The notes beneath the pieces are model-generated. The model was not told the origin of the DNA and searched no databases. It saw nothing but the letters and a program-made list of their open reading frames with translations. A DNA stretch of 64,000 nucleotides. It comes from Basidiobolus meristosporus CBS 931.73. Its lineage: Eukaryota > Fungi > Basidiobolomycota. The position numbers and the translations under genes are program-made. How positions within the stretch are numbered: position 1 is the first letter of the stretch; each line of letters begins with the position of its first letter. The stretch lies in the NCBI GenBank assembly GCA_002104905.1, contig MCFE01000189.1, positions 62,001 to 126,000 on the forward strand. The letters run 5' to 3'. Of this stretch, positions 5,978 to 63,763 are shown in pieces.

Positions 5978-6127
5978 GTTCTTCTGCCTTTTATAGGCTC
6001 AGCTATTCCTGAGATACTTTCTTAACATACTAATGCTAGCCCAAAAACCACTTGCTTGTTTCAATTCCAGATAATGCTCATGGAACAAGTCAAGTGCATT
6101 CTGCTTGGCCTTGAGTTCCTGATAGTC

Positions 6128-21806: not shown

Positions 21807-21807
21807 T

Positions 21808-21817
21808 TGGTAGCAGC
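21808..21817 (+). promoter_or_regulatory. Gypsy primer-binding site, probably for the 3' end of initiator tRNA-Met
   Basis: TGGTAGCAG is complementary to the ...CUGCUACCA 3' end typical of eukaryotic tRNAiMet. The host tRNA itself is not in the window. Confidence 0.7.
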
Positions 21818-21864
21818 AATAACCAGAAACCTCCCTCCTGAAGAAAGAAGAAACCACCCTCAAG

Positions 21865-24800: not shown

Positions 24801-25998
24801 GAAGATAATCCGTGATGAAGCCAGCAAATTTGTTGTACAGGATGAAACACTCTACCAAATTGTTGATAGAAGCCCTATTGCCTATTGTCCTTATGTTGCT
24901 TGCCTGGATTTAATACATAAGCTACACAAAGGATATGGACATCTTGGGATTGAAGGAACCTATAGCCTTGTGAAAGCCAGAGCATGGTGGCCCAGAATGA
25001 AACAAGATATTGAGAAGCTAGTGAAAACATGCCCAAACTGCCAAATCAATCAAGGCCAGCCACAAAGAATTGCCGAACTCTTCCCTTTGGAGCCTGTAAG
25101 ACCATTTGAGAGATGGGGAATTGACTTTATTGGAAGACTGCCAACTACCAGGAAATGCAACCGTTGGATCCTAGTAGCTATTGACCATGCCACTAAATGG
25201 CCAGTTGCTAAAGCTGTACCAATAGCCAGTGAACAAGAAGTTGCAAGTTTCATTTACCATGAGATCCTGATGAAGTTTGGATGCCCTGTGGAGATCTTAT
25301 CCAATAGAGGTGCAAACTTTATGGCAAAGACATTAGAGGCTTACCTGGAAATGCAGCAGATCAGACACTTGAAAACCTTGGCATATCACCCCAGAACTAA
25401 TGGAGTCACTGAGCGGTTTAATGGATTATTTGGAAAAATGCTGACCAAGTATGCAAATGGAGTTGTCAGTAGATGGGATGAGTATATAGACCAAGCACTC
25501 TTTGCATGCAGAGTCAGAGTACACAACACCACCCAGCAATCACCATTTTACTTAGTTTATGGATGTGAACCAAGGATTCCAGGAGATCTCACACAACCAA
25601 AGCTTACAGACATCTTAGAAGATGAACTCAGTCAGCCAAGTAGACACCAGCAACTAGAACAAAGACGTCAAGAGGCACAGACCAAAGTATCTCAAAGTGC
25701 AGAAAAGATGAAGCAGAGATTTGATAAGACTATAGCACCAGAAGCATTGACAGTTGGGAACTTTGTATTGCTAAGAAACAACACTTGGAAGAAGTTTGAG
25801 CCACAATGGACAGGACCATTCAAGATCATCAGAGAATGTCCATTTGCAACTTACCAACTGGTGGACAAACAAGGCAATATCCGAGAAGACTTAGTGCATA
25901 GGGACAGACTCAAGCTTGCAAGACTTGCTGATAATACTGAACCATCAAGATATTGGTATCACAAGAAAAGAGATCCAGGAGAACCCTCTCAACTTTAG
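21865..25998 (+). CDS. gag-pol: Gypsy Gag-Pol polyprotein, 1377 aa (Gag, CCHC knuckle, protease, RT, RNase H, integrase with GPF motif, no chromodomain)
   Basis: [36 protein letters not shown] zinc finger, WGIDFIG, ILSNRG (catalytic D replaced by N), TERFN, WTGPF. Domain order PR-RT-RH-IN. Confidence 0.97.
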
Positions 25999-26008
25999 TA
26001 GGGGAGAA

Positions 26009-26385
26009 TGTTATGATCTGCCGCTTGAATGTTTAAGTTAGATCAGTATTTAGTCAAATCAATTAGTATATGTTTAGGTTACAAGTATATCAGTATTATC
26101 TATGAAATCAGTAGCATTAGTCAGCAAATGAATCAGCAGATCCTTATCAGACAGAAATAGATATATTAAGTAGGATCTTATTGGGTGATGATGATGCAAT
26201 CAAATGAGCCATCAGCCACAACCTACATTAGGAAATACAATTAGTCAGCAATTGATCTGGGAAAATGTATATAAGGAGCTGCTGGAACGTCAATAAAAAT
26301 CAGTTCAAGTTTTAGTGAAAACAATACTAGCTAAACTCCCTATTCCTCTACAACTCTTATACTAAGACTTGTAACATTTGTAACA
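26009..26385 (+). repeat. Gypsy 3' LTR (377 bp)
   Basis: Follows the PPT; direct repeat of the 5' LTR. Confidence 0.97.
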
Positions 26386-36200: not shown

Positions 36201-39200
36201 GGCTTGTTTCCCATCTATGCAGGCTTCACAGTGCTCCAAATTAGCTGGGATTAATTTTTACTCCAGAAGTTAGCTGATCTTTGATCATTTTGCCCAAATC
36301 ATCAAATTTGATGTCCCCAAATCTCCTGTGCCAAAGCGTTGGTGTTTTTTCATTTAATTTACTTATACTGGCTTCCAAATATGATGGAATATAAGTCAAC
36401 TTGTATAGATTCTGATGTCTGATACCCAAAGCAATATGGGCACCATTTTGATCAGTGATTATGCATCCAAAATTGTCAAAGTTGAAACTGAGACCTTCTG
36501 CAGTGGTCATGCTTACAGATAGTAGGTTCTTGGCTATTTCTGGTACATAGAGTACTTCATTAAAGGTCAGTGTATGGCTTCCTTCACTGCTTCTTAGGTT
36601 TACTTTAATAGTTCCTTCTCCCACTGCTTCAAGTGTTCTATCTGTAGTAAAAATTTGTAATTCCACCCAAATATTCACCTAACTTAGTCACTTAGATCAC
36701 TACCTTCAAATCCTAGAGAATACTGACCAAATTCCTTGTTGGGATTTACTTAGAATATTTTCACCAAAGTACCAGGTACCCATAACATGAAAACTCTGAA
36801 AGTTGTCTAAGCAGCCCCAAACTTTGTGCACATGCTCTTGGGACCTTCCCAAACCTGCTCTACATGTTTGTTATGCCAGGACTATGTAAAAGTATAAACA
36901 CTACATTTATATTCAATACATCATTAAGTGAAAACCACATAACCCACTTGTTCTCACAATCACTTCCAATATCTCCAAGACTCTTACAACAGACTATGAG
37001 TCCCAAGCTGTCACTCTCTGCAATGTTTACTACTGCTATTAATGGAATCTTCCCTCTGCTGAAAAGCTGGATGGATCTAACTACCAAGTGTGGAAGGTGA
37101 AGATGAAGATGCTGCTACAAGAAAGAGGCCTTTAGGATATTTTCATGGGAGAAGAATGCCCTCCTAAAAACATGGGAGAGGAAGCCTTAAAGTACCAGAA
37201 GAAAGAACAAAGTGCCTTTAACTACATATGCCTTAATGTTAAGGACAAATTGCTAATTCAATGCTCAAGAGCAAAAACAGTAAATAATGCCTGGAAGGCA
37301 TTAGAAGACACCTACCAGTCATGTTAAGCTTCTAAGAAAATGTATCTGAGACAAAAATTCTTTATTACAAAGATGCAGCCAGGAGGAGAAATGAAAAATC
37401 TAGTTAACGGAATTACCCTGCTGGTAGATGAAATGGAATCTGTGGGCATACCAACTACTGATGAGGATGTGATAGTTACCATCCTGAATAGCCTAATAGA
37501 CAAGTTTCAGGTCCTTGTATCAATCCTAGAGTCCAAAACTGAAGATTTGACCTTAATTTATGTATATGGAAGGCTCCTGGATGAAGAATTAAGAAAATCA
37601 AGCGCCAATAAGAAGGAAGGAGAAAATGCTTTAATCAGCAATGATAACCAACAAAGGAGGTACCCAAGATCCTACAAAGGCAACAGCAATCTGTGTTGTA
37701 AATACAGCAAAAGGAAAGGACAAACATCACACCGGTGCTTCAAAAAGAAAGACAATCAGCAAAAGAAGTCTGAAAGTGGAAATGCGGCAACAACTGAAGA
37801 TAGACTATTCATATCTGCACTAAATATGCCACAAACAAGGATTCTCAGACGTGGTATATTGACTCTGGAGTATCTCAACACTTTACACACCAAAAATAAC
37901 TTTTTACCCAATACCAATAAATTCCAATTAAGAAGGTTTTCATGGGTGACAATAGAACACTTGAAGCAGTGGGAGAAGGAACTATCCAAGTAAACCTAAG
38001 AAGCAGTGAAGGAAGCCATACACTGACCTTTAAAGAAGTACTCTATGTACCAGAAATAGCCAAGAATCTACTATCTGTAAGCAAGGCCACTGCAGAATGA
38101 CTCAGTTTCAGCTTTGACAATTCTGGATGCATGATCACTGATCAAAATGGTGCCCATATTGCTTTGGGTATCAGACATCAGAATCTATACAAGTTGACTT
38201 ATATTCCATCATATTTGGAAGCCAATAGAAGTAACTTAAATGAAGAAACACCAATGCTTTGGCACAGGAGATTTGGGCACATCAATTTTGATTATTCGGG
38301 CAAAATGATCAAAGATCAGCTAATTTCTGGAGTAAAATTGATCCCCCAGCTAATTTGGAGTACTGTGAAGCCTGCATATATGGAAAGCAAGCCAGACAAC
38401 CATTTAAGAGCTCTAGGTTGATCAAAACTAAGAAAAAATTAGATCTAATTCACTTAGATCTGTGTGGACCTATGCAAAATTTATCCTTAGGTGGGATGAA
38501 GTATTTAATCACCTTTATTGATGATTTTACAAGATACACATGGGTCTACTTCATGGGGAGAAAGGAAGAAGATCTGTCTAAGTTCAGGGAGCTTAAAGCC
38601 ATGGTTGAGAGAGAAACTGGTGAAAAAATCAAGAAAATATGCTCTGACAATGGTGGAGAATATATCTCAAAACTCTTCATCCACTTCTGCACAATTCATG
38701 GGATAAAGCAAGAGACTACTGTACCATACTCTGCACAGCAATATGAAGTAGCAGAATCTTCTAACAGATCAATAATTGATATGGCAAGATCTATGATCCA
38801 TGATCAAAAATTATTCTATGATTTTTGGGTGGAACCAGTTGCCACAACTGTATATCTCAAAAATAAGAGTTATAACAGAATACTTTATGGTTCTACTCCA
38901 TTTGAAGCATGGTATGGATACAGACCAAGTGCAGAACATCTAAGAACATGTGGGTGTACAACATATGCCAAGTAACTGCCCAAAATCAGTCAAAATTCAA
39001 GCCAAAAAGTATAAATTGCATATTTTTGGGCTACTGCAATGCAAGTAAATCATACAGACTCTACACCACCAAAGCAAAGAAGCTAGTCAAGTCCAGGGAT
39101 GTGTTTTTTGATGAAAACCTAAAATATTCATAAAAAATGACATCAGATTTGATGAAAATCTGATCTCAAGTCCACCAATTGTCAGGATTGAATCAGAGCA

Positions 39201-42200
39201 AAACAATGAGAATATTTTCACTCCAGAGGACTATACAGCCATGATTCAGCCAGAATCAGAGCCCAGGAATATTCCAGAAGTGATTATTCCAGTATCAATT
39301 GCCTGGAGATCCAATTGGACAAGAAATAGCCCAAATACTTTATTATGGAGGGTACAAACTTAGCCTATGCCTATTCAGTCCATATTGATGAGCCCCAGAC
39401 TGTAAAAGAGGCCCTAAATAGCCCTCAGACAAAGTCTTGCAGATCTGCAATTACTGAGGAATGTCAGGCCCTAATGGAAAATCAAACTGGGGACTTAGTC
39501 AAATTACCAATTGACTAAAAATCAATTGGGTGCAGATGGGTCTTCAAGACAAAATACAAGGCTGATGGTACAATTGAAAGATACAAAGTAAGACTTGTGG
39601 CCAAAGGATACTCTCAAACAAAAGGACTTGACTATACTGAGACCTTTGCACTGGTAGCCAAGTTTAATTCCATCAGATTGATATTGGCTGTTGCAGCCAA
39701 TTATAAGTTTTTTATTCATCAAATGGATGTAAAAACTGCATTTTGAATGGAAAACTTGATGAGGACATGTATATAGACCAGCCTAAAGGGTTTGTTGACC
39801 AAGATATCCCCCATTTGGCCTGCAGGCTTAAAAAGTCACTATATGGTCTCAAACAATCACCAAGAGCCTGGAATTGCAAGATAGATTCTTGTTTAGGATC
39901 TTTGAGTTTCAAAAGGAGTAATGCTGACTATAATATATACTGCAAGCCAGATGGAGCAAATCCAGTTCTATTAGCTCTCTATGTGGATGATCTTATTATA
40001 GATGCCAATAACCTAGAAACATTGGAAGAGGGTAAATCCAGCTTATCTAAGGAGTTCACGATGTCCAATCCAGGAGAACTCAGTCACTACTTAGGGTCCA
40101 TGTTCTACATAGACAGAAGTACCCAAACTATCACCCTAAGCCAGTCCAAGTATATTCAAGATATACTAAAGAAGTACCAAATGGAAGACTGTGAACCAGC
40201 AGCTACCCCAATGGAGACAAACCTTAACTTGGTCAAAACTCAACCAAATCAAGAGAGGCTTGTGCCATCTAAAAGCCCTGACTTTCCTTATCATTCCATG
40301 GTTGGCATTCTGATGTATATCATGCTTGGAACACGTCCAGATATCTCAAATTCAGTGGGAGTTGTCAGCCAACATAATCAGAACTATGGATCTGATCATA
40401 TTGCAGCAGTTAAGCGGACTTTTAGATACCTAAAAGGAACTGCTGATATTTACTTAAGATACATTTAAAAGGACTCAGAACAGGATCTTGTGGGATACTC
40501 TGATGCTGTTTGGGGACAAAATTTAGAAGACTGAAGATCCACCACAGGATACACCTTTCTTTACTGTAAAGGAGCAATCTCATGGAGCTCAAGAAAGCAA
40601 CCAACCATAGCACTTTCTACCACAGAGGCAGAGTATATGGCAGCCTGTGAAGCCACAAAAGAAGCAATGTGGCTAAGGAAGCTTTTTACAGATATAGGCC
40701 TATGGCAAAAAAACGCCTATTACTTTATTTCAAGATAATCAAGGACATATACAATTAGGTAGAAATCCAACTTTTCATGCTAGAACCAAGCATATATATA
40801 GTAGACATCATTTCATATGCAAAGCTATAGAGAGTAACTTAGTTAACTTAGTTTACTGCCCTTCAGATGAAATGATTGCAGATATATTTACCAAACCATT
40901 AGCTAGAGACAAGTTTGAATATCTTAGGTCAAAAATAGGACTAGTCAGTATGAACATTTAGCTGAGTGGGAGTGTTGTAAAAATTTGTATTTCCACCTAA
41001 ATATTCACCTAACTTAGTCAGTTAGATCATTACCTTCAAATCCTAGAGAATACTGACCAAATTCCTTGTTGGGATTTACTTAAAATATTTTCACCAAAAT
41101 ACCAGGTACTCAGAACATGAAAACTCTCAAAGTTGTCTAAGCAGCCCCAAACTTTGTGCACATGTTTTTGGGACCTTCCTAAACCTGCTCTACATGTTTG
41201 TTATGCCTGGACCATGTAAACATATAAACACTACTTTTACATTAAGTAATTCATTAAGTGAAAACCACATAATCTACTTGTTCTCCCAATCACATCCAAT
41301 ATCTCCAAGACTCTTACAACACTATTGTCACCCATGAAAACCTTCTTCATTTGAATTTCTTGATATTGGGTAAAAAGTTGTTTTTGGTGTGTAAAGTGTT
41401 GAGATGCTCCAGAGTCAATATACCATGTGTGAGAATCCTTGTTTGTGGTCATCTTTAGTGCAGATATGAATAGTCTATCTTCAGTTGTTGCAGCATTTCC
41501 ATATTCAGGCTTTTTCTGCTGACTATCTTTCTTTGAAGCACTGGTCTGATGTGTATCCTTTCCTTTTGCAGTAGTTGCAAAACAGGTTGCTGTTGCCTTT
41601 GTAGGGTCTTGGGTACCTCCTTTGTTGGTTATCATTGCTGATTCAAGCATTTTCTTCTTCCTTCTTATTGGCACTTGATTTTCTTAATTCTTCATCCAGG
41701 AGCCTTCCATATACATAATTTAAGGTCAAATCTTCAGTTTTGGACTCGTCTTTCAGGCTATTCAGGATGGTAAATATCACATCCTCATCAGTGGATGTTA
41801 TGCCCACAGATTCCATTTCATCTACCAGCAGGGTTATTCTGTTAATTAGATCTTTCATTTCTTCTCCTGGTTGCATCTTTGTAATAAAGAATATTTGTCT
41901 CAGATACATTTTCTTAGAAGCTGAACATGACTGGTAGGTGTCTTCTAATGCCTTCCAGGCATTCTTTGCTGTTTTTGCTCTTGATCATTGAATTAGCAAT
42001 TTGTCTTTAACATTAAGGCAAATGTAGTTAAAGGCACTTTGTTCTTTCTTCTGATACTTTAAGGCTTCCTCTCCCACGCTTTTAGGAGGGCATTCTTCTC
42101 CCATGAAAATATCCTAAAGGCCTCTTTCTTGTAGCAGCATCTTCATCTTCACCTTACACACTTGGTAGTTAGATCCATCCAACTTTTCAGCAGAGGGAAA

Positions 42201-46423: not shown

Positions 46424-48656
46424 ATGATAATGATTGTGCAATGGCTTGTATTGCTTTGTCTATCTAAGGACTTGGCTTTCGGTGCAGCTATTGAAGATAT
46501 CCCAGAGAGAGTAACTTATTTAGTGGAATTCAAAAAGCCTGCTGGCGATTCTATCGCGTGCAGAGAGCAGCAGAATAGTTTTCTGTCGGAAATGAAGGAA
46601 AGAGGAATCTGGACCAAGGAAAGAGTTTCCTTCTCACGCTTAGTGAATGCGATGTCGGTGGAATTCTCCTCGAAATACCTAGACTCCATTGCTAATGCGC
46701 CTGACGTGGAGAAAGTTTGGCCAGTGGTATGTGACAATCGATTTCCTTTCTTTGCAAGAACTTGGTTGACCCGTTTATTCATGCTACTAATAAACCAGAA
46801 TACATTTACACTAAATGCCGGCGACATAATCCAAGCAATTGCCCAACCTGGGTCATCATCCCTTGCTCGGCTAGCTCTTAGTATGACCGGTATCGACAAA
46901 GTCAGAGCCAAGTACGGATATACTGGTAGCGGGATACGAATTGGTGTGGTGGATACTGGCGTTGATTGGAGTCACCCAGATTTGGGGGGCTGTTTTGGCG
47001 AGGGTTGTAAAATACGCTATGGATTTGACTTCGTGGGTGATGAATTTGGTAGAAGATCACCGATCCCGTCTCCTGATGGAGATCCAAGAGATTGCCATGG
47101 CCATGGAACTCATGTCACGGGCATCATTGGGGCAAAGGGATCCGACTATTCCGGAATAGCCCCTGATGCTACATTTGGTGTTTACAAAATATTTGGCTGT
47201 AAAGCAGATACCACAAACGATGAGTACATTATCCAAGTAAGCACGGTTCGCTTAACTACTATTCTGCAGCAATCTTATTCATTATGTTCCTCGAAAGGCT
47301 TTGGAAATGGCGGTTCGTGACGAAATGGATGTCATCAATTTATCTTTAGGTTCCCCGGTCCCCTGGGGCGAAACCCTGGCGGCCAAGGCCGTTAACAGAG
47401 CCGTATCACGAGGGGCTTCTGTTGTGGTCTCCTTTGGAAATGATGGAAGAGCAGGATTGTGGACTGGCGGCGAGCCATCTGTGGCTAGTGATGCAATTGC
47501 TGTAGTCTCTCTAGAGGGCAACAAAGTATCCGATTTTTCCTCATGGGGACCAGACTTTGAGTTGAATTTGAAACCGGATGTTGGCGCTCCAGGAAGGAAG
47601 ATCTTTTCTACTTGGCCGGTATCAAAGGGAGAGTATGCTTTACTGTCAGGCACCTCCATGGCTGCTCCACATATCAGTGGGGCTGTTGGACTTTATATAC
47701 AAGGAAAAGGAAGGAGGGCCCCAAGGCAAATACTCGAGAGAATGTTGACTACCTCTGATCCCATCATAGACAGCAGCAACGGCATCCTGGCACCAGTCGC
47801 AAGGCAGGGCGGTGGCATGCTGAACCTTCCAAAAGCCATCGAGTCCGAGACACTTATCAGGCCAGTGAAGATCGCGTTGAATGATACCTTGCACACCGCT
47901 TCCGTCCGCACTATTACAGTCACAAATGAGGGAAGCGCTGCCCAGACTTATACCTTCGCTCATTCGCCTTCGGCCTCGGTGAATGGGTACTTGGCATCCG
48001 GCCTGCTCACTACAACCCCACGCCTAAGCCCAGTGTATGCTACTGTTGACTTCGACAAGACCTCGGTTACAATTGAGCCTGGGCAGAGTCAAAGAATAAC
48101 GGTCGGAATTCGTCCACCAACGCTTCCCAGAGAGCAATACTGGATTTATAGCGGATATATCGATATTCATCAGGAACAGAATGATGAAATCTACCATGTG
48201 CCATATTTGGGGATCAGTGGAGACCACAATAGCCTTCCCATTCTGAGTGATCCAAAATTCCCAGCCATACTAACCCAGCGAACCGGAAACAAACTCTACA
48301 ACGACCAATCACAGACGGTAGTCTCCTCATTAAATGAGAACGATGCGGTGGTTTTGCTATTCCGGCTCACCCATCCAACGCAGCTAATTAACATTAGAAT
48401 TTGGAGGGTGGATGGGTTAAGACCCAGGCTTCAGGGCTACCTAACCAGGAGAGGCTTTGTAGGACGCAGTATTGATGGTGAGGTTCAGACATTGCGATGG
48501 AGCGGGCGCATCGATAATGCAGCAGGGCAGATTGTGGACGAGGCAGAGAGCGGAGCTACATATCAATTGGTCATCGAGGCACTAAAGCCTTTCGGATCAC
48601 CAAGGAATAGTCAGGATTATGACAGGTGGTTTTCCCCAAGGATATTCGTTGACTAA
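46424..48656 (+). CDS. Secreted subtilisin-like serine protease (S8, I9 propeptide, C-terminal Fn3-like/DUF1034 region, no PA insert), ~699 aa; exons 46424-46726, 46799-47236, 47298-48656
   Basis: Hydrophobic signal peptide; triad VVDTG, HGTH, GTSMAAP; oxyanion GNDG; KPDVGAPG. Introns GTATGT...CTAAT...CAG (72 nt) and GTAAGC...AAG (61 nt), both phase 0, join the two track ORFs in frame. Confidence 0.93.
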
Positions 48657-49646: not shown

Positions 49647-50558
49647 TCAGTTTGAGAGCCTGCGACGTTTGCTCGAAACCATGAACGGATCCTCGCAGTG
49701 GATATCGTGGATTGGCGAGGAGGTTAACAACTGGGCGTGCTGATCTCCGGATGATTCAACTTCGGGCTCTTCTGGAATGAACATTAGATCATGATCACGC
49801 AAAGGTGATACAGGTGAACTAATCACTTCAAATTCCACCTCTCCCTGAATATTAGGCAGTGGCCTACAGACCTTTTCTGTAGGCATATGAGGGTCCCATT
49901 TCTCAGTATTATCATCATAAGACAAGCGACGTTTGAAGTCCTCAGCCGAGTCGCCTTGAACAGAGAGACGCCTAAGCTTTGGTGGGTTGTTGTAATCATA
50001 TCCACCAGGACTTGCAACCGAAATTTTCGAAGGGAGCTTGGCCGGAGTGTTTGAAAGAAGGCATTTTACAAATGGAGATGTTGACTCTCCGAGGGAACCC
50101 GGTAGGCTTCGGGTGCGAATGGGTGTAGTAGCGATGTCTGCAGCAGCTGTGGTCCGATCCTTGGGGGAGAACACGTCGGTTCTCTCTAATTCTCTACACT
50201 CGCTGTCTCTCTGAAGTCGGGTCGCCAAAGGAGTCTCACCGTCAGTCTCCTCGAGCAGTGGATTGACATTGATGAAGTTGACCACTACTCTATTCTCTCG
50301 GGGGACTCTGACTGGTAGGCTCGGCATAGGGTTGGCCGATTCTCTCTTTTTCGAAGAGAGGTTTATGGTTGAAGGACGGCGTTTACGAGTGTTGGGTATC
50401 ACGGGGAATTTCTGATCATGAGCTCTTCCTGAATTCGACCAATCTGGAGGAGGAATTGTCCAATACGGGCTTTGCATCTCTGAAGGTGTTGATTTCTTAC
50501 GGGAGTCTTTAGAACGAGGAGTAAGGGGACAAGAAATGGTTGAGGTCGACATATTCAT
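49647..50558 (-). CDS. Hypothetical intrinsically disordered Ser/Pro-rich protein, 303 aa, possibly nuclear
   Basis: Long stop-free ORF in CpG-rich DNA. First ATG is at 50558 (the track start is a TTG). About 12 S/T-P sites, four RRxS motifs and a C-terminal KRRRL. Confidence 0.75.
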   Translation of the reverse strand: MNMSTSTISCPLTPRSKDSRKKSTPSEMQSPYWTIPPPDWSNSGRAHDQKFPVIPNTRKRRPSTINLSSKKRESANPMPSLPVRVPRENRVVVNFINVNPLLEETDGETPLATRLQRDSECRELERTDVFSPKDRTTAAADIATTPIRTRSLPGSLGESTSPFVKCLLSNTPAKLPSKISVASPGGYDYNNPPKLRRLSVQGDSAEDFKRRLSYDDNTEKWDPHMPTEKVCRPLPNIQGEVEFEVISSPVSPLRDHDLMFIPEEPEVESSGDQHAQLLTSSPIHDIHCEDPFMVSSKRRRLSN

Positions 50559-52568
50559 CCTCCAGCAATGATTATTCACTAGGAGATTCAATCACTTGGT
50601 TTGGCACTTCCCCACCAGAGGAATTTCAATAGCGCAGCGATGGCAAGGTTAATTTATTAAATGTTGGAAGGGAATGCTCATATTGGAAGGGGACTCGGCC
50701 CAATAAATATAGTGAGCCACCCTGGTTACGATGCACTAAAACAAACGAATCGCGACATCAAATTTGCAGCGATAGTACAACAGGGGTCAGGGAGAAAAGA
50801 TGGTGGCTACGTCTCAACCATTGTTCTATATTAATTCTAGGATTAAATATGGTTTTGTCAGGTGCTAAAGCTCAAAAAACGCTAGAAAGGCCGGAAAAGC
50901 GAGGAATATTTATTAAAATCGCTTTTCTTTTAATAACTGGCTTTTAGCACTTGACAAATCCGGTTCGATAGATACTTGATTCAGGCTATGGGATATGATT
51001 GGTGGTCCTGGGTATCGATGGAGTGAATCAATTGATTCTTAGTAAATAAGAGATCTCATCAGATGTTGCCTACTGCCAACAAATCAAGCGCCATATCTAT
51101 TTCGGAAGATCTATATACCTTCATTTACCATCATATGAAGCTCAAGATGACCAAGATAGTGGGTACAAATGGTATAATTGGAACCGCTCTATTGGCTGAT
51201 CCGTATCTCGAATCAGTGGAGGGTCTGTGCGATGTATACTTCATGATCCATCGTGAACTTGCTAGTTGTACTACTACTTCCTGTGGTGCTGCATTGCTGA
51301 GATTTGGCTGCTAGAGTTAATTAAGGTTTTTACAAAAACTGGGCAGCAGCGACTGCAAAAGCAAGAGAATACCGATTTGTACAGGGTAAATCTAGTTGAT
51401 GTGCTCAAAAAGTTGTACGGTGCTCTATGCCTACATAAGCATCGGCTCAATATGTCAAAGACAGGATAGTGGTCCCATTACGTTGCACTGTTCTGTATTC
51501 GAGTTGGGATTTTGATTATTCAGTGAACGTGAGCTCGCAATTGGTATATTGTAGTGTGTGGTGCAATGAATATCCGTGCAGCGGCTAGGATAATTATGAG
51601 CGAACGTTGTGACAACTTCTGACATATCTATTGACGAAATTAGACCTGCAGATTCCAAGTGTCTGGGTTAACCTAGAACTGGTATAATCGCTATCTTCAT
51701 CACAATCGGCTGCATTGTATCTTCATGTTTCCCTTATGAGCCAGATAATGTTTGCTTTGTTTCTTTAAATACCTTTGCCAATACGTAAAAGCCTACAGTG
51801 GTTTCTACGGAGAAGCGAGTGAAAGACCAACAAAATTGCTCTGGGCTTATTTGTTTTGCCATACCGGATGGTCACCAGTGATGTAGTATAAAAGTTTCAA
51901 ATCTCCCATCCAATAATCGATAATCACGCTGATTTTGTTGGTAGTTGATAACTGAAACCTGGGTAAATCTAAGATTGATCTCAACAATCAATTACCCCAA
52001 CCTTGCAGCTTTTGGAATGCATGTGTTGTATCCAGTTTCATCTTTAGAAACCATGGTTCAAATGCTTTTGGTACATCACAATGAATGTAGGACTCTAAAC
52101 CACATCTTCCATACTTTATGGATTCTATTCCACCGGATCAAAGTATTGTAGTACTCTTTGACTTTGAGCCCTGCCATTCATATTCCATTAGGTAACTCGT
52201 TTAATAGTTGAACTCATTTTATAGACATGCCAAAGAAAAGGGAGAAGATTGGAATATGAGAAACCTCTAGATTTTTCTGAAAATGAGTTTGACAGCAGTT
52301 ATGCTAAGATCTGGTAGGCTTGATGTATTAAGGTGGCTTTTCAGAACACTATCTAGAGTGCCAATATTTCTACCCATCAAGTCAATGGTTAATTTCTGAG
52401 TTTTCTGTTAGATGGTCCAAATATATTTTATCCTACTTCACCGTGTACCGCGATATTCTTATTTATGTTCAGATTAAGCTGCAAAAATAGTCACTATACG
52501 AAATAAAAATCTGGGACACGTGATCTTTCCAATTTATAGACAGCCTATTGTACAGCTGACTCCCGAAA

Positions 52569-54355: not shown

Positions 54356-54885
54356 ATGAATCATGCAAACTCTACTCTTTTGGCCTTAACCCTACCGTCG
54401 AGATTCTTTATGAGATGGATAGGTTAAAAATGCTCCCAATACACTCGCAGCATTTGGAATGTACAAGGAGTATCTGTATGACATTCTATTTCCCATGAGT
54501 TCTGTACGAAACTATATCACCTGGTTTGTGGAAATCGAATCAACACAATCCTTCCAATCAGGTCGAGTCAGCACTCAGGACAGCTTGTCCAGGGAATGAA
54601 CATCAGACTAAAGTCTCTCCTAAGGGTAGAGTACTTAATGTACTCACCAAGAGGTGAGTTTGTTAGAGAAGCATGTGGCCTAAAAAACTGAAGATGGCTT
54701 CATTTTACAAGCGCAACATTTGCCTACTAGGGTCATGGCGATGTTTATTTCCCGTGATGTCAATCGATGTTCAGTTAATTCCGAACAACAGGACATCAAA
54801 AACTAAAAGCTACTTTGCTGAAAACACAAGTTTTGTAAAGACTCGCTACTTGTGGCTTAGCCTCAATGCGTATTAGTATGATGTA
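54356..54885 (+). pseudogene. Degraded 5'-half copy of the 387-aa membrane protein family
   Basis: aaggagtatctgtatgacattctatttcccatgagttctgtacgaaactatatcac and downstream DNA align with 57570-58000, with multiple frameshifts. Confidence 0.85.
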
Positions 54886-55215
54886 TGAGGGGAAAGCAAG
54901 AAGGATCACGTTTAAGCAACCCAAAGATTATTTCAGTCCAAACTTCATAATAAGAGGCAATACTACGGATTTCCGATAATCTGATTAAAATTAAGTAGGT
55001 AGCATCTATACTATGAGACTAAAGGTTTCATAGAATGTAGAATAATGATGCATACCTCAACAAGACCACGTAATGTTGGGCTTCACTAGGTGTTAGGTAA
55101 TGTAGCACGGGCAACATAAGCCCTTGGCTGTGATATACCGGTGACTGATATTTTGTCTATATACGTCTCAGAACTTGTGCAAAGTAATGCATTTGTGGTT
55201 CAACTAGGTACAGAA

Positions 55216-55952
55216 ATGAGTGATGACACATTAATTATTACAGAAGAACGAAGAACACTCATGCAAGTTTTTTTCCTGGGACTTGCCGTTGCCTGGACAC
55301 TGAGATTGGTTATGAGAAAGATCCAAATTTTCCCGAACACCCTCGCAGCATTTGGACTGTTCAAGGAGTATCTGTATGCCATTCTCTTCCCCATGGACTC
55401 TGTCCGAAACTACATCACTAGATGTGGCCATGATCATTCCACTGTTGTACTCATTCGGCAAGTGTATTGCACCAGTGTTCATCACTCTGGAATCCGATGA
55501 TTTCCATGCCAGCAAGTATTTTGTCCAGATGACTGAGAATAACCAATCCAATGAGGATATCTACATTGGCAAGGTTTCAAGCACCAAAGAGTCAGTTCAC
55601 AAAGAAACAATGCTCAGATATGCAATGGAACAAGCAATTGACTCGATCGCATATACGGCTTTGCATTTTATGATATATTACACCTGGAGAGAACTTAATC
55701 TTTATGGGGTGGAAGGAATTTATCCGCACAATCGTCCATGCGAATAAGTGTGTTGGTATACGGTATATTTCCAATTCGTGGGATATGGTAAACATACTGA
55801 AGCGATTGTGTAGTGTTGCTCGATTGGTAAAAGTTAGGCAGCTGTATTTTGTCAATAATAAGGTCATTAGTCTCTTGAACTGGTCTGAGCCTGCTCTGTC
55901 TCTTGTCTATATAATTGCCCGGCTTTCTTCAATATTGTATTTTCTGCATTAA
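55216..55952 (+). pseudogene. Pseudogene of the 387-aa family with a 434-bp internal deletion and later stops
   Basis: The junction catcact|agatgtgg at 55419/55420 corresponds to loss of 57631-58064 in the intact paralogue. It has its own distinct N- and C-terminal variants. Confidence 0.92.
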
Positions 55953-56017
55953 ATGAACACCTGATGTAATTAAATAAAAATCAATGCAAATCAACTTTGC
56001 GGAAACCAGTTTTTTTT

Positions 56018-56748
56018 GTGATTCTGGATCATGCTGTATGACGTGTCAACGGACCACCATTTTATGTGTGATTTCCTGTTGGTATAATATCTAACCCGAT
56101 CTCTTTTCAAATACATACAAATCTAGCGATTGCTCTGAAAAAATATCGTTTCCTTCTGGTGGTTACGTTCTCATTCGGGTGATTACCTCATTGTGCACTT
56201 TGTGTTCATAAAGTAGTTTTCTAGTCTTTCTATTTGTACTTTTGCCACCCAAAATCCAACACGAAGTACGGATCGTGGTTTAGGAATGCCGGTGCTTCGG
56301 GTATATGTATTACCTTCAAGAATTTTTTGCATCGGCAAGGAATCTGGGAATTGAATTGGTTTATAACAGTAGGCATGATACAGTTGTATTTGCAAGTGGA
56401 TAATTTTTTTTCAGGATGTGAGGCAGTACTTTCAGTGATGTAAGTGGTGTTCAAGACATGTACAAAATAAGCCGTAAACATTGGTGCACTCCTCATGCTA
56501 ATGTTTCGAAAGTAAAGCTTCATCAAAGCCAAACTCAAGGAACTACACACCAGTGTTAACGTTTGCCGGAAATCCACTCTATTCTGGCGTGAATTAGTAA
56601 AAGAATCAGCCATGTGTATGTCAGGTGTTCGTAGTAGCACCTGCTACGGGTAACAATGTGGACATCGGGATAAATACCAGACTATCTCAGTTTACTCCCC
56701 AAAATTCATTGCTGACAGTAATACACCAATTATAGAATTTATATAATG
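56018..56748 (-). pseudogene. Decayed coding-like segment X, copy 1
   Basis: Roughly 70-75% DNA similarity to 59464-60176, with in-frame peptide similarity (NSQIPCRCKKFLKVIHIP vs NSQITF*CQKFLKAIHKP; FMNTKCT in both). Family unknown. Confidence 0.5.
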
Positions 56749-57263
56749 GCTGAAAGCGTACCTCGATGGAAAACGCCCTACGCCATCTTTATAAATTATT
56801 TCTTAATCCAAATTTCAGATTGGATGGGCTGATAGTTACATACCAGTTAACATCAATGTATCATTAAATACTTGTACCTTGATGAGCTCACCAGAAACGC
56901 AAGAGATCCCTTACAAGAATTCTGTAGTGGAAAGCCTAAAACCTTTTGTGCACTTGCATATATATATATTTCTTAGATAATCTTTAAGGTATTTAGGTAC
57001 TTTATTGCATGACAAGAAGGGAATTGGGAGCAGCAAATACAAGCGACAGTATACCTGATAATACATCAAAAGAATATACTAAAATGGCTGGTGAAGCACA
57101 GCCTCAGTTAATGCCATCATACTAATGAAACATTCGCATAGCCCTTTGATTATATTATCATCACGGCTACTCACAAGCATTTTGTCCTGTGAATTTACAG
57201 GTGGCATTGATGCTTCCAGGTGCAATCCTGCGGAATCCACTACACGCCACTTGTGATAGCCTT

Positions 57264-57267
<4 letters not shown>

Positions 57268-57306
<39 letters not shown>
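57268..57306. repeat. (TA)n microsatellite, ~19 units
   Basis: Directly visible, ending ~120 bp upstream of the ATG at 57424. Confidence 0.97.
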
Positions 57307-57312
<6 letters not shown>

Positions 57313-57423
57313 GAATTGGGATCTTTTTGGTGCGACTTGTTTACAGAAACGTAAATTGCGGAAAATCACTTTAAAAACCGGCACGTTTGCTATTCGGTGT
57401 TTTGAAACATAAGCTGTACCAAC

Positions 57424-58587
57424 ATGGACATTAATTCGCAAGATAACTTGGAGGATGAGCTAAATGCTATTTTTTACCATATTTTGCTGTCCGTTATCTT
57501 TGCCATTATGCTAAGATTGGTCCTGAGGAGGATTCAGGTTGTCCCCAATGCCCTCACCTCATTTGGACTGTTCAAGGAGTATCTGTATGCCATTCTCTTC
57601 CCCATGGATTCTGTCCGAAACTACATCACTCAGTTCGTGGAAATCAAGTCAACACAAGCCTCCCAAAATCAGATCGAGTCAGCTCTCAGGGCGGCTTATT
57701 CTGGGAATGGCTACTGGGTCAATGTCTCTCCGAAGGCCAGGGCTGTCAGCGCACTCACTAGGGGCGAGATTGTCAGTGAAGCCCGTGGCCTGAAAAAGAT
57801 GATGATGACTTCATTCTACAAGCACAACATATGTCTACCTGAACAATGCCAATATGTGTCCGCAGTCGTGAAGGACGATGCCCAGCTAATCCTGAGCAAC
57901 AAGATCTCCATCTCACAGAGCCGCATTGCTGAAGACAAGAGTCTGCTGACAAAGGTTTGCTTCTTGCTCGTGGCCATGTACACGATGTATGCTATCTCCA
58001 CAATCACCTACTGCCTCTGGACAATGCATTACATTCCGGCAGCATATCGTACGATAAATTTGGTAGATGTGGCCATGGTCATTCCACTGTTGTACCCGTT
58101 CGGCAAGTGTATTGCACCAGTGTTCATCACTCTGGAATCCGATGATTTCCATGCCAGCAAGTATTTTGTCCAGATGACTGAGAATAACCAATCCAATGAG
58201 GATATCTACATTGGCAAGGTTTCAAGCACCAAAGAGTCCGTACACAAAGAAACGATGCTCAGATATGCACTGGAACAGGCAATTGGTTCCATTATATATA
58301 CAGCTCTACATTTTATGATGAGTTACACTCTGGAAGGTGTATATCTATATGGAGTGGAAGGGAGTTATCCTATAAACCAGGAACAACCCCCTCATTTCTT
58401 CGTTTCAATACTCTTCGGGCCCTTCACTTACGGCAAGAGTGCTGAAGCCATTGTGCACAGTGTTACTCACTCGGTCAGATTCGGGCAGCTGTATTTCACC
58501 AATAGCAAGGTCATCTGCTTCTTGAACTGGTCAGAGTCTATCCTATCAGTTGTGTATATGTATGTTCGCATTTATGCGATGTTTTAA
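57424..58587 (+). CDS. Uncharacterised multi-pass membrane protein, 387 aa, intronless (paralogue A)
   Basis: Intact ORF with hydrophobic segments at approximately aa 16-35, 178-199, 214-237, 286-303, 325-345 and 363-385. Conserved with two further intact paralogues. Confidence 0.9.
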   Translation: MDINSQDNLEDELNAIFYHILLSVIFAIMLRLVLRRIQVVPNALTSFGLFKEYLYAILFPMDSVRNYITQFVEIKSTQASQNQIESALRAAYSGNGYWVNVSPKARAVSALTRGEIVSEARGLKKMMMTSFYKHNICLPEQCQYVSAVVKDDAQLILSNKISISQSRIAEDKSLLTKVCFLLVAMYTMYAISTITYCLWTMHYIPAAYRTINLVDVAMVIPLLYPFGKCIAPVFITLESDDFHASKYFVQMTENNQSNEDIYIGKVSSTKESVHKETMLRYALEQAIGSIIYTALHFMMSYTLEGVYLYGVEGSYPINQEQPPHFFVSILFGPFTYGKSAEAIVHSVTHSVRFGQLYFTNSKVICFLNWSESILSVVYMYVRIYAMF

Positions 58588-59127
58588 TTTTCCAACTTCA
58601 GTAAACCCATGTATAAAGCTGAAAATAAGCTCAAATATCACCCCTAAGGGTAGCTGAGGCCTGTGATACACAGTCCAAGCGATTCCATAGAATGCAATAC
58701 GATCTTGGATCAACAATACTACACGACGTAGGGCTTACTCGGTATTAGGCAATATAGTTCAAGAAATACATACCTTGGTTGCGAAAGGCCTATGTCAATA
58801 TTTTTGTCTATATAAACACTAGCACATCTGCCAGGTAATGAGTTGGCGGTTTGGCCACACGCATTGAACAGATCGAATCGGAAAAGGGAACCATGGTGCA
58901 AATTGATCCCCGAGATCATGCGCCTCAGATCATCACCGTACCTGTCTCTGTAGATGTACTTGGAAATATCCTCATCTCATCTAGGCCATAAGTGATATAC
59001 ACAAAAGCATTCAAGTGAAAAGACCGAGCCGTCAGAGCAAAATGAAAGATGGTATGATTTCAAGTGGTGAAAAGGTTGACAACAAAATTAGCTTTTTCGT
59101 GTTGCTGACATGTAAGAGAGGGTCGTA

Positions 59128-60176
59128 TTAAATGCCAAGCCAGAATCGACACCATTTCACAACATTACAGTTCTTCGACATTGCTGCTTTGAGGACCTCT
59201 AGCATCAGGGCGGTCTGATAATCTATTATGGTATTATTCAAACTAGGATCCTGTGATGTGCCAAGGAGGCTTGGTAACTTGAGATATACTCTATTGAACG
59301 AGCCTGTGTTTTTATCCCTTAACCTCGAGCCAGCTCTCAGGGTGACTTCTGTGAATGGGCTGCCAGAGTGCTCACTAGTAATGGAATTGCCTCCAAAGCA
59401 TATGGTTAAAAAAATCTCACTACAGCTTCGTTTTACAAGCACAATACTTGTCAGATTATTCCTGTGGTTCTGGATTATGCTGTATGATGTGTCAAAGGAC
59501 CACCAATTTATGAGTAATATCCTGTTGGCGCGATATCTAACGCAAGCTCTTTTCAAATGCACGCAAAAGTTCGCGATTGTTTTGAAACAACATCTAGGTC
59601 CCTTGTGGTAGCTACGACATCATTCCGGTGATTACCTCACTGTGCACTTTGTGTTCATGAAGCAGCTTTCTGGTCTTTCTCTTTGTACTTTGTGCCACCG
59701 CAAGACCAACACGAAGAGCAGGTTATGGTCAAGTAGTACTGGTGATTGTATTGATACTTTGGGTTTGTGTATTGCCTTCAAGAATTTTTGGCATCAGAAA
59801 GTAATCTGGGAATTGTGTTAGTTTAGAACAGCAAGCATATATTTGAGTAAACAATTGCTATGATGCAAGGTGTTCAAGGGGCATATTAAACGAACCCTTA
59901 ACACCAGTATGTTCATCTCATTAAATGTTGGTTTGAAAGTAGAGCATTACCATTTCTAAGCTCGATGTACTACATACCAGTCTCGAAGTGCACCGGAAAT
60001 CTATTCATTTCCGCTGTGAATTAGCCAAAGAATCAACCATGTGAATATCAGTGTTCGTAGTAGCACCTACTATGGGCATTAATATGGAAATGGGGATCGA
60101 TACCAGACTATCTCAGTTTACTCCTGAAATTTCATTGCTGACAGTAGTACACCAATCATATAACCTATATGGTGGA
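59128..60176 (-). pseudogene. Decayed coding-like segment X, copy 2
   Basis: Homologous to 56018-56748 and continues into the 144-codon open segment 59128-59562. A signal-peptide-like stretch LRTLIFTWLILWLIH lies at its 5' end. Confidence 0.5.
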
Positions 60177-61065
60177 TAGAAACGGACATCAATGCGTGAA
60201 GAAAGAATGTACACAATGGAAAGCGAGCTGAGTACACTTTAAGCCATCCTTGTGACTATTTCACGATCCAAATTTAAGATCATAAGCAACTACTATTACT
60301 TTCCAGTTGACGTTGATGTGCCACCTGATACTTTTATCTTGACTGAGATGGCTAGGGAAGAAAAAGCACTGTGGTGAGGCTTTTCCCATCGGTCACCTTT
60401 ACCATCATGCTGAGATGGTAATACGATGGATAGTGGTTGATTGATCTGAGCAAAACTTTCAAAAAGAGTTTCGACAAACATTGCTTTTCTAGCCCTATGT
60501 TCATGGTAAGAAAGACGATCAGTTTTTTACTGAGCTACTCGTTTGATCAAACTTGAGCTACTGTGTTTCTCCAATAGCATCAGTATTTTAATCCGTAATA
60601 AGCCTTTCTAGTCAATATTTTATATATATCCACAAATTAGTGTATTATAGATAATGTTTGCACTCAACTTGATGTGAGGCCACACGGTAGAATCACGATT
60701 GGGGTACCAGTGTGTTGCAAATTCCAGATTGGCCAAGTGATTAGTGCTGTCACGGTTATGAGGCAGCCACATTGTAAGGCGGAAGTTGCTCAAAAACCTC
60801 TACTAATTTCGCATTTGAGCGTTTATCAACCGGTTCATTTTTATAATAATGAAGCAGTCGTCTAGCCTCTTGGTTGTACTCGATGTTATACTAGATTGGT
60901 ATAGATGATAAGATGAATAATTGACTGTAGCTATATATAGATATGAATGTGTATGCGTAGAATTTGGTTTCTTCCAGTGTAACTTGCTTAAAGTAAATTG
61001 CGGAAAATCACTTTAAAAACCGGCATATTTGCTATTCGGTGTTTTAAAACCTAAGCTGTACCAGC

Positions 61066-62229
61066 ATGGATAATAATTCGCAAGTAATCTCGGATGAAGA
61101 GTGGAATGATATTTTATACCATGCTTTCCTACCCATTATCTTTGCCATTATGCTAAGTTTGGTCCCGAGGAGGATTCAGGTTGTCCCCAATGCCCTCACC
61201 TCATTTGGACTGTTCAAGGAGTATCTGTATGCCATTCTCTTCCCCATGGACTCTGTCCGAAGCTACATCACTCAGTTCGTGGAAATCAAGTCAACACAAG
61301 CCTCCCAAAATCAGGTAGAGTCAGCTCTCAGGGCGGCTTATTCTGGGAATGGCTACTGGGTCAATGTCTCTCCGAAAACCAGAGCTGTCAGAGCACTCAC
61401 TAGGGGCGAGATTGTCAGTGAAGCACGTGGCCTGAAAAAGATGATGATGACTTCATTCTACAAGCACAACATATGTCTACCTGAACAATGCCAATACGTG
61501 TCCGCAGTCGTGAAGGACGATGCCCAGCTAATCCTGAGCAACAGGATCTCCATCTCACAGAGCCGCATTGCTGAAGACAAGAGTCTGCTGACAAAGGTTT
61601 GCTTCTTGCTCGTGGCCATGTACACGATGTATGCTATCTCCACAATCACCTACTGCCTCTGGACAATGCATTACATTCCGGCAGCATATCGTACGATAAA
61701 TTTGGTAGATGTGGCCATGGTCATTCCACTGTTGTACTCATTCGGCAAGTGTATTGCACCAGTGTTCATCACTCTGGAATCCGATGATTTCCATGCCAGC
61801 AAGTATTTTGTCCAGATGACTGAGAATAACCAATCCAATGAGGATATCTACGTTGGCAAGGTTTCAAGCACCAAAGAGTCAGTACACAAAGAAACGATGC
61901 TCAGATATGCAATGGAACAAGCAATCGGCTCGGTTGCATACACGATTTTGTACTTCGCGATGAAATTCATCCTACGGCGGTTATATAGGTATGGGATCGA
62001 AGGGATCTACCCTATGATGGAAGAGCCTTCAATCATGTTTCCAATGAGAGTAATTGACATGCACTTCGCTTACGGTAAGAGTGCTGAGGCGAGTGTGCAT
62101 AGCGTTGCTCGATTGGTAAGAGTTGGGCAGCAGTATTTCACAAATGGCAAGGTCATTCGCTTCTTGGATTGGTCCGAGTCTATCCTGTCGGTCATATATG
62201 TATATGTTCGTGTATTTGCAATTCTGTAA
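61066..62229 (+). CDS. Uncharacterised multi-pass membrane protein, 387 aa, intronless (paralogue B)
   Basis: Colinear with A without gaps: 8 differences in aa 35-289, 15 of 34 in the N-terminus and ~45 of 98 in the C-terminus. Confidence 0.9.
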   Translation: MDNNSQVISDEEWNDILYHAFLPIIFAIMLSLVPRRIQVVPNALTSFGLFKEYLYAILFPMDSVRSYITQFVEIKSTQASQNQVESALRAAYSGNGYWVNVSPKTRAVRALTRGEIVSEARGLKKMMMTSFYKHNICLPEQCQYVSAVVKDDAQLILSNRISISQSRIAEDKSLLTKVCFLLVAMYTMYAISTITYCLWTMHYIPAAYRTINLVDVAMVIPLLYSFGKCIAPVFITLESDDFHASKYFVQMTENNQSNEDIYVGKVSSTKESVHKETMLRYAMEQAIGSVAYTILYFAMKFILRRLYRYGIEGIYPMMEEPSIMFPMRVIDMHFAYGKSAEASVHSVARLVRVGQQYFTNGKVIRFLDWSESILSVIYVYVRVFAIL

Positions 62230-62599
62230 TTATGCGATATTTGGTTGATCGATTCGAGCTTAATACACTGCAATTAGCTGTAGCTGGCAAGGTATGCACT
62301 ATAATCTAGTAACGGATCACCATTTTGGTTGAAGATCCGATATGAATAATACATTAAACACTTTCTATAATCTTTACTATAAAGCACACTTCAGTGAGTG
62401 AAAGCAGATTAGCCCGAGGTGCCTAAAAGAATACGGATGAAAAGCACATATCACTACAAACTATAGCGAATATTCTGCTTCTATGATGAAACAGACGACT
62501 TGGTTGTTGGAACATGTGTATATTCTCGAGCAAAAGAATTCTAAGATACGTATGGTGCAGGTTATTTAGAATCAGGCATAAGATACAGATGGATGTGTT

Positions 62600-63763
62600 T
62601 TACATCTTTAATGTTATATATCGGTTATAGAGGACAACGAGCACTCGGACAAAGAAATAGATGACCGAAAAGATCGCTTTGGTAAACGTGAGCACGGCAA
62701 TGGTCTTTCTATCAGTAAAATATACCATTGCAAGTGCATTCAAGCATAGCATATTATGAATTATTGTTTCAATGATAGGGAAAAAAGTTTCCACTGGTTG
62801 TGGTTGGTAGGAATACACCCATCCAATCTCTGGGGTGAACCAATACATCGGTGATTCAGTTGCAAAAGCAAGCATTACATAGAGTACTGTGTATACCATG
62901 GAGCCAATTGTTTTTTCTAGCAAATATCGAAGCTTAACCTTTCTTTCTATTACATCTTTGGTTTCACTTGGCTTCTCAGATAGATTTTCACAGCTTGAGG
63001 GTTCTGAGAGTAATGTAAAATCAGGATTCAAAGAAAGTTGATCCGACTCCAAGGTGATAAACACAGGTGCAATACACTTGCCAAAAGTGTAAAAGAGCGG
63101 GGAGAATATGATCGCATTGTTTATGAATGCTGATAAGTAAGGCTCGTGGCCACTAGGGAGTCTCCATATATATGTGCCACAGAAATACGCAGGCACAGCA
63201 TAAGCGCAAGCTAGTAGAATAACGAGAGCGCATACTTTCGTAGTAGTGGTGTCATCTTGAGTGATCCGGCCTTGTGAAACAGAAAATCTCTGCTTTATGA
63301 TGAGCGAAGCATCTTGTTCACGTACTTTTGTCAAGAGTACGCAGTCAGATGGTATCTTCACAGTATGTTTGTGCAGTACAGAAGTGAGAAATCTTGTAGG
63401 TGGAGATGCCTCTGTGAATACAGTATCCTTTTTGAACGTCACGATGTTTGTGTTTTTTGGGCAGGCATCGACCAAATAGCCATTCCCAGCGTAAGCAGAT
63501 CTTAAGACTGATTCCGCGTGCCCTTGCATTCCTCCTGCTGACTTGATCTCCACAAATTGCGTGATGTAGTCTCGAATGGGGTCCATTGGGAACGCCAAGG
63601 CCCAAAGATACTCCTTAATCAGGCCCAATGTTGATAAGCTACCAGGTATGATCTGCATTCTTCGAAGGAGTAAGCTGCCAAGATGGGAAATCATGCCAGG
63701 AACCAGAAGTATTTGGAGCCTCTCATAGAGAATATCATAAACAGAGGTTTCATTCATTTTCAA
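62600..63763 (-). CDS. Uncharacterised multi-pass membrane protein, 387 aa (divergent paralogue C, tail-to-tail with B)
   Basis: Shares KEYL.A..FPMD..R.YITQFVEIKS, ES.LR.AY.GNGY, FGKCIAPVFITLESD, LRY..E..IGS..YT.L and YFT..K.I with A and B. Confidence 0.9.
   Translation of the reverse strand: MKMNETSVYDILYERLQILLVPGMISHLGSLLLRRMQIIPGSLSTLGLIKEYLWALAFPMDPIRDYITQFVEIKSAGGMQGHAESVLRSAYAGNGYLVDACPKNTNIVTFKKDTVFTEASPPTRFLTSVLHKHTVKIPSDCVLLTKVREQDASLIIKQRFSVSQGRITQDDTTTTKVCALVILLACAYAVPAYFCGTYIWRLPSGHEPYLSAFINNAIIFSPLFYTFGKCIAPVFITLESDQLSLNPDFTLLSEPSSCENLSEKPSETKDVIERKVKLRYLLEKTIGSMVYTVLYVMLAFATESPMYWFTPEIGWVYSYQPQPVETFFPIIETIIHNMLCLNALAMVYFTDRKTIAVLTFTKAIFSVIYFFVRVLVVLYNRYITLKM

Follow-up and report, generated by a model that had tools for sequence, protein, structure and literature searches.

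A tandem array of genes for predicted six-helix membrane proteins, found only in the fungal genus Basidiobolus

What are the products of a cluster of intronless membrane protein genes that resemble no known family, how did the copies arise, and are they driven to diversify? These questions are raised by a stretch of 64,000 nucleotides (here called the window; positions 62,001 to 126,000 of contig MCFE01000189.1, 137 kb, assembly GCA_002104905.1) from Basidiobolus meristosporus CBS 931.73, an early-diverging fungus of the Zoopagomycota and neither plant nor animal. B. meristosporus is a frog-gut fungus, and its habitats are soil, insects and amphibian guts. A preliminary description, made from the letters of the window, had noticed five gene copies near its end and read them as a diversifying receptor or recognition system. 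The family is previously undescribed, and its proteins are found in databases only as hypothetical proteins. Our best explanation, which we put forward tentatively, is a genus-restricted tandem family of predicted six-helix architecture with an inferred role in sensing or ion conduction.

The window contains three intact genes and two pseudogenes of the family, as originally described; open reading frames (ORFs) stand at the stated places for the three genes, and tblastn confirms the two decayed copies. Gene A (57424-58587, plus strand; public protein P0003) and gene B (61066-62229, plus strand) each encode 387 amino acids. Gene C (62600-63757, minus strand) matches the public gene model P0001 and encodes 385 amino acids counted from the first ATG, or 387 if started at a TTG at 63763 (extent 62600-63763). 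That the genes lack introns was also borne out, since the ORFs align end to end with a single-exon B. ranarum protein. The count of five copies holds for the window, but the array is larger and runs past the window end with two more intact genes. In L001, the locus around gene C in reversed orientation, gene D (5552-6715) encodes 387 amino acids and gene E (7821-8936) encodes 371. The whole array comprises five intact genes, two pseudogenes and the relic of a further copy in about 14 kb, and its boundary is a peptidase M13 gene after genes D and E.

The decayed copies were delimited by tblastn with family members. Pseudogene psi-1 (about 54363-54873, plus strand) covers residues from about 12/37 to 186; its reading frame shifts near residue 78 and is interrupted by two in-frame stops, and its C-terminal half is gone. 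In psi-2 (55219-55937, plus strand), residues 5-70 are fused to 214-387 by deletion of 71-213; a stop interrupts this copy near residue 322, and its frame shifts at 345. The relic (59359-59451, plus strand) consists of about 31 codons corresponding to residues 107-137, with 48-52% identity. Since the spacers that follow psi-2 (56010-56768, plus strand) and gene A (59456-60194) share 81-83% identity, the duplicated unit was the gene plus its spacer, about 3.5 kb. The approximately 76 nucleotides 5' of the start codons of genes A and B (57348-57423 and 60990-61065) are about 90% identical. A simple-sequence repeat (57079-57441) lies within about 350 nucleotides upstream of gene A; its minus strand reads as alternating Ile-Tyr codons, 12 pairs in all.

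The range of the family was determined by an exhaustive hmmsearch with the family profile against 1.84 billion representatives (local HMMER matching, no length filter). Of the 13 matches, 11 were proteins of B. meristosporus or B. ranarum. The other two, P0014 and P0015, are bacterial metagenomic DUF7507/DUF11/HYR repeat proteins, in which one 50-residue stretch of the profile was matched 4 to 8 times through a motif resembling P-V-F...S-D-D (E = 1e-12 to 1e-16). They were rejected as spurious because the scores of a short recurring motif are summed over the repeats. Word searches with family members also returned Basidiobolus proteins only; that with gene C gave its own public model and a B. 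ranarum protein 54% identical to it. A metagenome scan yielded 413 pattern matches, none of which was confirmed. As far as public data go, the family thus appears confined to the genus Basidiobolus, the answer to the question of taxonomic range that the preliminary description had posed.

Within the genus, B. meristosporus has at least 15 intact copies: the window array, a second array of about ten copies and two singletons (P0005 and P0016). The second array, on MCFE01000622.1 (L003, 600-20600), holds its approximately ten copies in about 20-21 kb on both strands, with eight ORFs of 219-394 amino acids plus several fragments. Its members form a divergent subfamily with only 17-25% identity to the window genes, and the public gene model P0011 (671 amino acids) merges two adjacent copies. 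B. ranarum has at least four members, dispersed among housekeeping genes. A maximum-likelihood tree resolved two subfamilies (support 100/100) that are 20-25% identical to each other. In the same tree genes A, B and D form a burst specific to B. meristosporus, and gene C pairs with B. ranarum P0002 (K7432_005370; 54% identity), a single gene beside a peptidase M13 gene. Gene C and P0002 are therefore orthologues, given their pairing in the tree and their common neighbour, and the lone gene at this place in B. ranarum points to growth of the array from one locus. Synteny was not found on the other side: the BBE oxidase, TMEM230 and ricin-lectin genes that neighbour P0002 are absent from the window. 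No recurrent functional neighbours of family members were found at the loci examined.

Averaging hydropathy over the family gave six peaks, at residues 16-34, 178-196, 217-235, 286-304, 340-358 and 369-387. Six or seven transmembrane (TM) helices had been proposed; six are supported both by the averaged hydropathy and by a structural model of gene A, while a candidate for the seventh, in the segment 40-75, stays just below the threshold at 0.86. The model, an AlphaFold2 prediction from 16 sequences spanning 17-82% identity, is of medium confidence (predicted local distance difference test [pLDDT] 65.6, predicted template modelling score [pTM] 0.64); an earlier prediction from six sequences, with a pLDDT of 39.5, could not be used. 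Its helices lie at 4-38, 174-201, 213-223, 268-312 (45 residues), 325-357 and 361-386, with a mixed alpha/beta region at 46-170 and strands at 228-250 followed by a disordered loop.

The orientation in the membrane was deduced from the charges of 18 members. Their N-termini contain 35 Asp or Glu but only 4 Lys or Arg, and Lys and Arg follow TM1. Per 100 residues, Lys and Arg number 2.5-7 in the N-terminus, the 2-3 loop, the 4-5 loop and the C-terminal tail, and 11-15 in the stretch after TM1, the module that follows it, the 228-282 segment and the 5-6 turn. By the positive-inside rule, this distribution places both termini outside and the module in the cytosol. Eight of the 18 N-termini carry N-x-[ST] sites, which is weakly consistent with an external location. 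The cytosolic segments would measure about 135 and about 55 amino acids and the external loops about 10 and 10-25, with external parts of about 60 residues in total. The predicted architecture is therefore that of a protein of about 385 amino acids which crosses the membrane with six TM helices, exposes both termini on the outside and has its conserved alpha/beta module in the cytosol. This agrees with the earlier proposal of an external N-terminus and a cytosolic conserved region, which charge asymmetry and the model put at about 135 amino acids. The proposal that the variable segments are external is supported in part: the same predictions place the N-terminus and the TM4-5 loop outside, but a further variable loop, 251-267, is predicted to be cytosolic.

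Sequence blocks that had been called invariant are so among the window copies, but across the 17 full-length members only seven residues are invariant (gene A numbering): P60, R65, T69, Q70, G288, S289 and E341. R65, T69 and Q70 belong to a family-wide motif R-x-[YF]-I-T-Q. Conservation in at least 88% of the members extends to 12 further positions: I68, G94, D152, L155, P221, P232, V233, D240, Y281, Y292, H345 and L367.

Searches for a known family or fold were negative. Pfam (three window genes at E≤1 and ten further members at E≤10) and NCBIfam (four members) returned only sub-threshold noise, namely MASE7, TolA, DUF2975, ABC_export, ABALDH and UgtL, in accordance with the statement that no Pfam family was recognizable. 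PDB sequences gave no match below E = 0.4, either with a single protein or with a 16-sequence profile. With the second model, Foldseek against the PDB reached at best E = 2 and a TM-score of 0.28; its non-significant top rows were G protein-coupled receptors (GPCRs) of class A. The VIA searches of that model (wide, then a second look) found no significant match, and the fold searches otherwise matched only generic helical hairpins at residues 320-387. A shape search of the ESM Atlas stayed at TM-scores of 0.31 or below, and a feature search with the whole protein and with the 38-175 module gave no usable match, its structure rows having TM-scores of at most 0.36 on a poor model; those for the module showed a weak, non-significant Rossmann-like resemblance (0.30-0.36). 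Internal duplication was sought with hhalign (TM2-3 versus TM5-6, TM1 versus TM4, N-terminal versus C-terminal half), with probabilities below 1% throughout. A match to a housekeeping family, named beforehand as an outcome that would speak against a receptor, was not found in these family and fold searches. The family is a genuine orphan, without recognizable relative or fold.

How, then, did the copies come to differ so unevenly? Genes A, B and D have no insertions or deletions relative to one another. Over codons 37-290, A and B are 97% identical with a synonymous divergence (dS) of 0.075, whereas over codons 291-387 identity is 65% and dS 1.68; the synonymous contrast between this core and the C-terminal third is highly significant (Fisher p = 8e-20). 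Likewise, B and D differ with a dS of 0.555 in the first 36 codons versus 0.046 in the core (p = 6e-5). Because amino acid and synonymous divergence jump together, the mosaic is a product of gene conversion among copies that differ in age and not of selection for change. In A, B, D and psi-2, conversion homogenized codons 37-290, the core; the ends are older and divergent. The ratio of non-synonymous to synonymous change (dN/dS) is 0.20-0.25 in the core and 0.20-0.23 in the divergent C-terminal third, where the deficit of non-synonymous changes has p = 1e-8. For the N-terminus it is 0.34-0.47 in two pairs and 1.1 in one pair, the latter from 21 changes (p = 1). Between the orthologues C and P0002, dN/dS is 0.24 overall with dS saturated. 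Here non-synonymous differences peak at 0.50 in both the N-terminus and the 4-5 loop and at 0.52 in the cytosolic 251-267 loop; the lowest values belong to TM3 (0.11), to the strand segment (0.15) and, at 0.20, to the module. Judged by these codon comparisons, the genes are functional and constrained, under purifying selection, with outer segments that are relaxed rather than demonstrably driven. The family evolves via tandem duplication, decay and gene conversion.

These features can be combined into a working picture. The short acidic N-terminus would lie outside and TM1 would act as a signal anchor, followed by the cytosolic alpha/beta module of about 135 amino acids that bears R-x-[YF]-I-T-Q. 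After TM2 and TM3, a conserved beta segment (P-V-F) would lead back to the cytosolic module, and a variable acidic loop would follow. TM4 would be a long helix with the invariant Gly-Ser; TM5 would carry the invariant Glu and, four residues on, the nearly invariant His; and TM6 would lead to an external C-terminus. Divergent TM1, TM5 and TM6, together with the short outer loops, may tune each paralogue. It is possible, though we hold this part to be doubtful, that these membrane proteins sense stimuli or conduct ions and that their working core consists of the invariant intramembrane polar residues together with the conserved cytosolic module. Several points weigh against the picture. The topology was derived from hydropathy, charge bias and a medium-confidence model from only 16 closely related sequences; the TM5 peak at 340-358 is weak (mean Kyte-Doolittle value 1.12); and the N-terminus would change sides if the amphipathic segment 46-76 were a seventh membrane helix, as it could be. 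The invariant Gly-Ser, Glu and His could equally serve packing, catalysis or transport. Finally, since orphan tandem arrays are common in this genome, the array form alone is little guide to function.

The same residues can be read as belonging to an intramembrane enzyme or to a transporter of small solutes, either of which might, for instance, handle lipids or xenobiotics in the gut; Ser, Glu, His and Asp would then be catalytic or bind substrate or ions, and the module would bind a cofactor or substrate. We consider this unlikely, although it ranks ahead of the other alternatives. It would account for polar residues within predicted TM helices (G288-S289 and E341, invariant, and H345, present in 88% of members), for the strong conservation of the module and its faint Rossmann-like resemblance, and for purifying selection throughout. 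However, no enzyme or transporter family or fold was matched, no nucleotide- or cofactor-binding motif is visible, a transporter-type internal repeat was not found, H345 is replaced in 2 of 17 members, and core enzymes are seldom restricted to one genus or arrayed with pseudogenes. Somewhat less likely still is a special form of the sensing idea, in which the proteins are stimulus-gated channels or receptors of a new fold, invented in Basidiobolus or diverged past recognition from 7TMIC-like ancestors, where TM1, TM5, TM6 and the outer loops form paralogue-specific ligand pockets and the TM5 Glu/His, the TM4 Gly-Ser and the module gate or transmit the signal. A strongly diverged branch of the 7TMICs proper (insect odorant and gustatory receptors, GRLs and plant DUF3537), that is, tetrameric ligand-gated cation channels serving as chemoreceptors, would make 46-76 the second TM helix and the N-terminus cytosolic, and is very improbable. 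Two B. ranarum members are indeed named "Odorant receptor" (P0004, KAK9765675.1) and "Gustatory receptor" (P0006, KAK9720804.1) in UniRef, but these names are probably machine-generated, come without a Pfam 7tm_6 or 7tm_7 signature and should not be passed on unless a structural test backs them; no paper linking Basidiobolus to gustatory-receptor-like proteins was found, and a broader literature search on chemoreceptors and orphan families gave none on Basidiobolus. Size (about 380-400 amino acids), loop lengths, external C-terminus, long C-terminal helices (268-312 and 325-357) and tandem birth and death are alike, seven helices with an internal N-terminus would be geometrically feasible if 46-76 (0.86) spans the membrane, and 7TMICs are known to drop to about 8% identity and to escape sequence searches (PMC9998090). 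On the other side, both predictions count six helices, and the positive-inside rule puts the N-terminus outside. None of the 13 members searched matched 7tm_6, 7tm_7, Trehalose_recp or DUF3537; a regular expression for the last-TM motif [TS]Y-h5-[QKE][FLM] found nothing in 18 members; the family profile matched no PDB sequence; and the structure search, made with a model of medium quality, gave no 7TMIC fold. No test made here assigns the family to the GPCRs or to the 7TMICs.

The reading given in the preliminary description, a diversifying surface receptor or non-self recognition protein with positively selected external segments and a conserved intracellular signalling module, has to be judged by the evolutionary data, and these make it a poor candidate, if a better one than the 7TMICs. 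It draws on the external N-terminus, the TM2-3 loop and the TM4-5 loop being the least conserved parts (non-synonymous differences of about 0.5, versus 0.11-0.20 in TM3, beta segment and module), on the restriction to one lineage, the copy-number differences between species and the pseudogenes, and on the one N-terminal comparison with a ratio of 1.1. Yet that value comes from just those 21 changes (p = 1), and wherever variable segments have enough changes the ratio is 0.20-0.47. Moreover, dS rises with amino acid divergence (1.68 versus 0.075 for A and B, 0.555 versus 0.046 for the N-terminus and core of B and D), the external parts amount to only about 60 residues, and one of the variable loops is cytosolic. 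The more specific versions did not survive either: no HET, NACHT or other recognition domain appeared in the Pfam searches, and the structure search of the second model did not support the GPCR fold of the GPCR-like sensor that had been suggested. Genus restriction, tandem amplification, gene conversion, pseudogenes, species-specific expansion and a window rich in Ty3 and copia elements would also suit a selfish or conflict-driven family, comparable to the wtf drivers of Schizosaccharomyces or to killer-immunity membrane proteins and spreading by duplication and conversion in transposon-rich DNA. This is the least credible of the readings: the array has no flanking long terminal repeats (LTRs) and the nearest elements are more than 14 kb off, the B. 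ranarum members are single genes amid housekeeping genes, each gene consists of one ORF without introns and shows no sign of dual transcripts, and purifying selection is unlike the rapid change expected of drivers. The genus-restricted family of predicted six-helix proteins, possibly with a sensing or ion-conducting role, thus remains our preferred explanation.

If the predictions hold, the architecture is an undescribed one, in which a folded cytosolic module follows the first helix as an insertion and a strand segment beyond the third helix completes it, in proteins with no detectable relative outside one early-diverging fungal genus. R65/T69/Q70, G288/S289 and E341/H345 form a compact, testable residue set, and the paralogues are a natural series with exchanged ends, useful for structure-function work. 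The array is also a clean case of gene conversion mimicking "hypervariable ends" and cautions against reading mosaic paralogues as products of diversifying selection. If the channel or receptor reading is true, the family would be a fungal chemosensory repertoire for life in soil, insects and the amphibian gut; no link between the family and host interaction was found.

The remainder of the window, which has a G+C content of about 39%, is eukaryotic DNA with Ty3 and copia retroelements. Between the array and a subtilase gene lies an ORF of 314 amino acids (49647-50591, minus strand) without a Pfam match. The subtilase gene (46424-48656, plus strand; Inhibitor_I9, Peptidase_S8 and fn3_5) is read as two ORFs overlapping at 47301-47320, a split due to either a frameshift or a short intron. 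A Ty3/gypsy LTR retrotransposon (21431-26308) appears young and intact: an uninterrupted ORF (21865-25998) encodes a gag-protease-reverse transcriptase-RNaseH-integrase polyprotein of 1377 amino acids, and direct repeats of at least 300 nucleotides (21431-21730 and 26009-26308) are 98% identical. Copia-type remains (33633-35354, minus strand, and 37340-40468, plus strand), with RVT_2, rve and Retrotran_gag_2 matches, are split into several ORFs on both strands.

How does the family compare with known systems? The bacterial membrane sensor domain MASE7 scored 17.9 and 18.7 bits over TM2-TM3 of genes A and B, against a gathering threshold of 26.2 bits; the match was absent from gene C and ten other members and is attributed to hydrophobic composition. 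Rhomboid intramembrane serine proteases have GxSG in TM4 and a His in TM6. Prompted by the Gly-Ser in TM4 and the His in a later TM helix, a rhomboid-like protease was considered and rejected for the Basidiobolus proteins, whose motif, G-S-[ILMVF], lacks the second Gly, and which gave no Pfam Rhomboid match. With the 7TMICs (insect Or/Gr, GRL, plant DUF3537 and PHTF) the family shares a polytopic chain of about 350-500 amino acids, intracellular loops that are long and extracellular ones that are short, an external C-terminus, long C-terminal helices, tandem birth-and-death arrays and extreme sequence divergence. However, among the six features that define 7TMICs only loop length agrees, and four do not; the last-TM motif is diagnostic of that group but not obligatory (PMC7746228). 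GPCR-type receptors (Ste2/Ste3, Git3, Pth11-like and class A) resemble the family in their external N-terminus, their polytopic helical bundle and, in some fungi, their multigene nature, but they are seven-helix bundles with the N-terminus out and the C-terminus in, unlike the layout predicted for the Basidiobolus proteins. In their evolution, the wtf genes of S. pombe and the DUP240/COS genes of S. cerevisiae offer a parallel: they occur in one genus, in clustered copies with pseudogenes and with mosaic paralogues formed by non-allelic conversion, and a function has been hard to assign to them. The wtf genes contain introns and yield two transcripts, and two TM helices are present in DUP240 proteins. 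Neither group is known to have a cytosolic alpha/beta module, whereas the Basidiobolus family has one by prediction and is under purifying selection.

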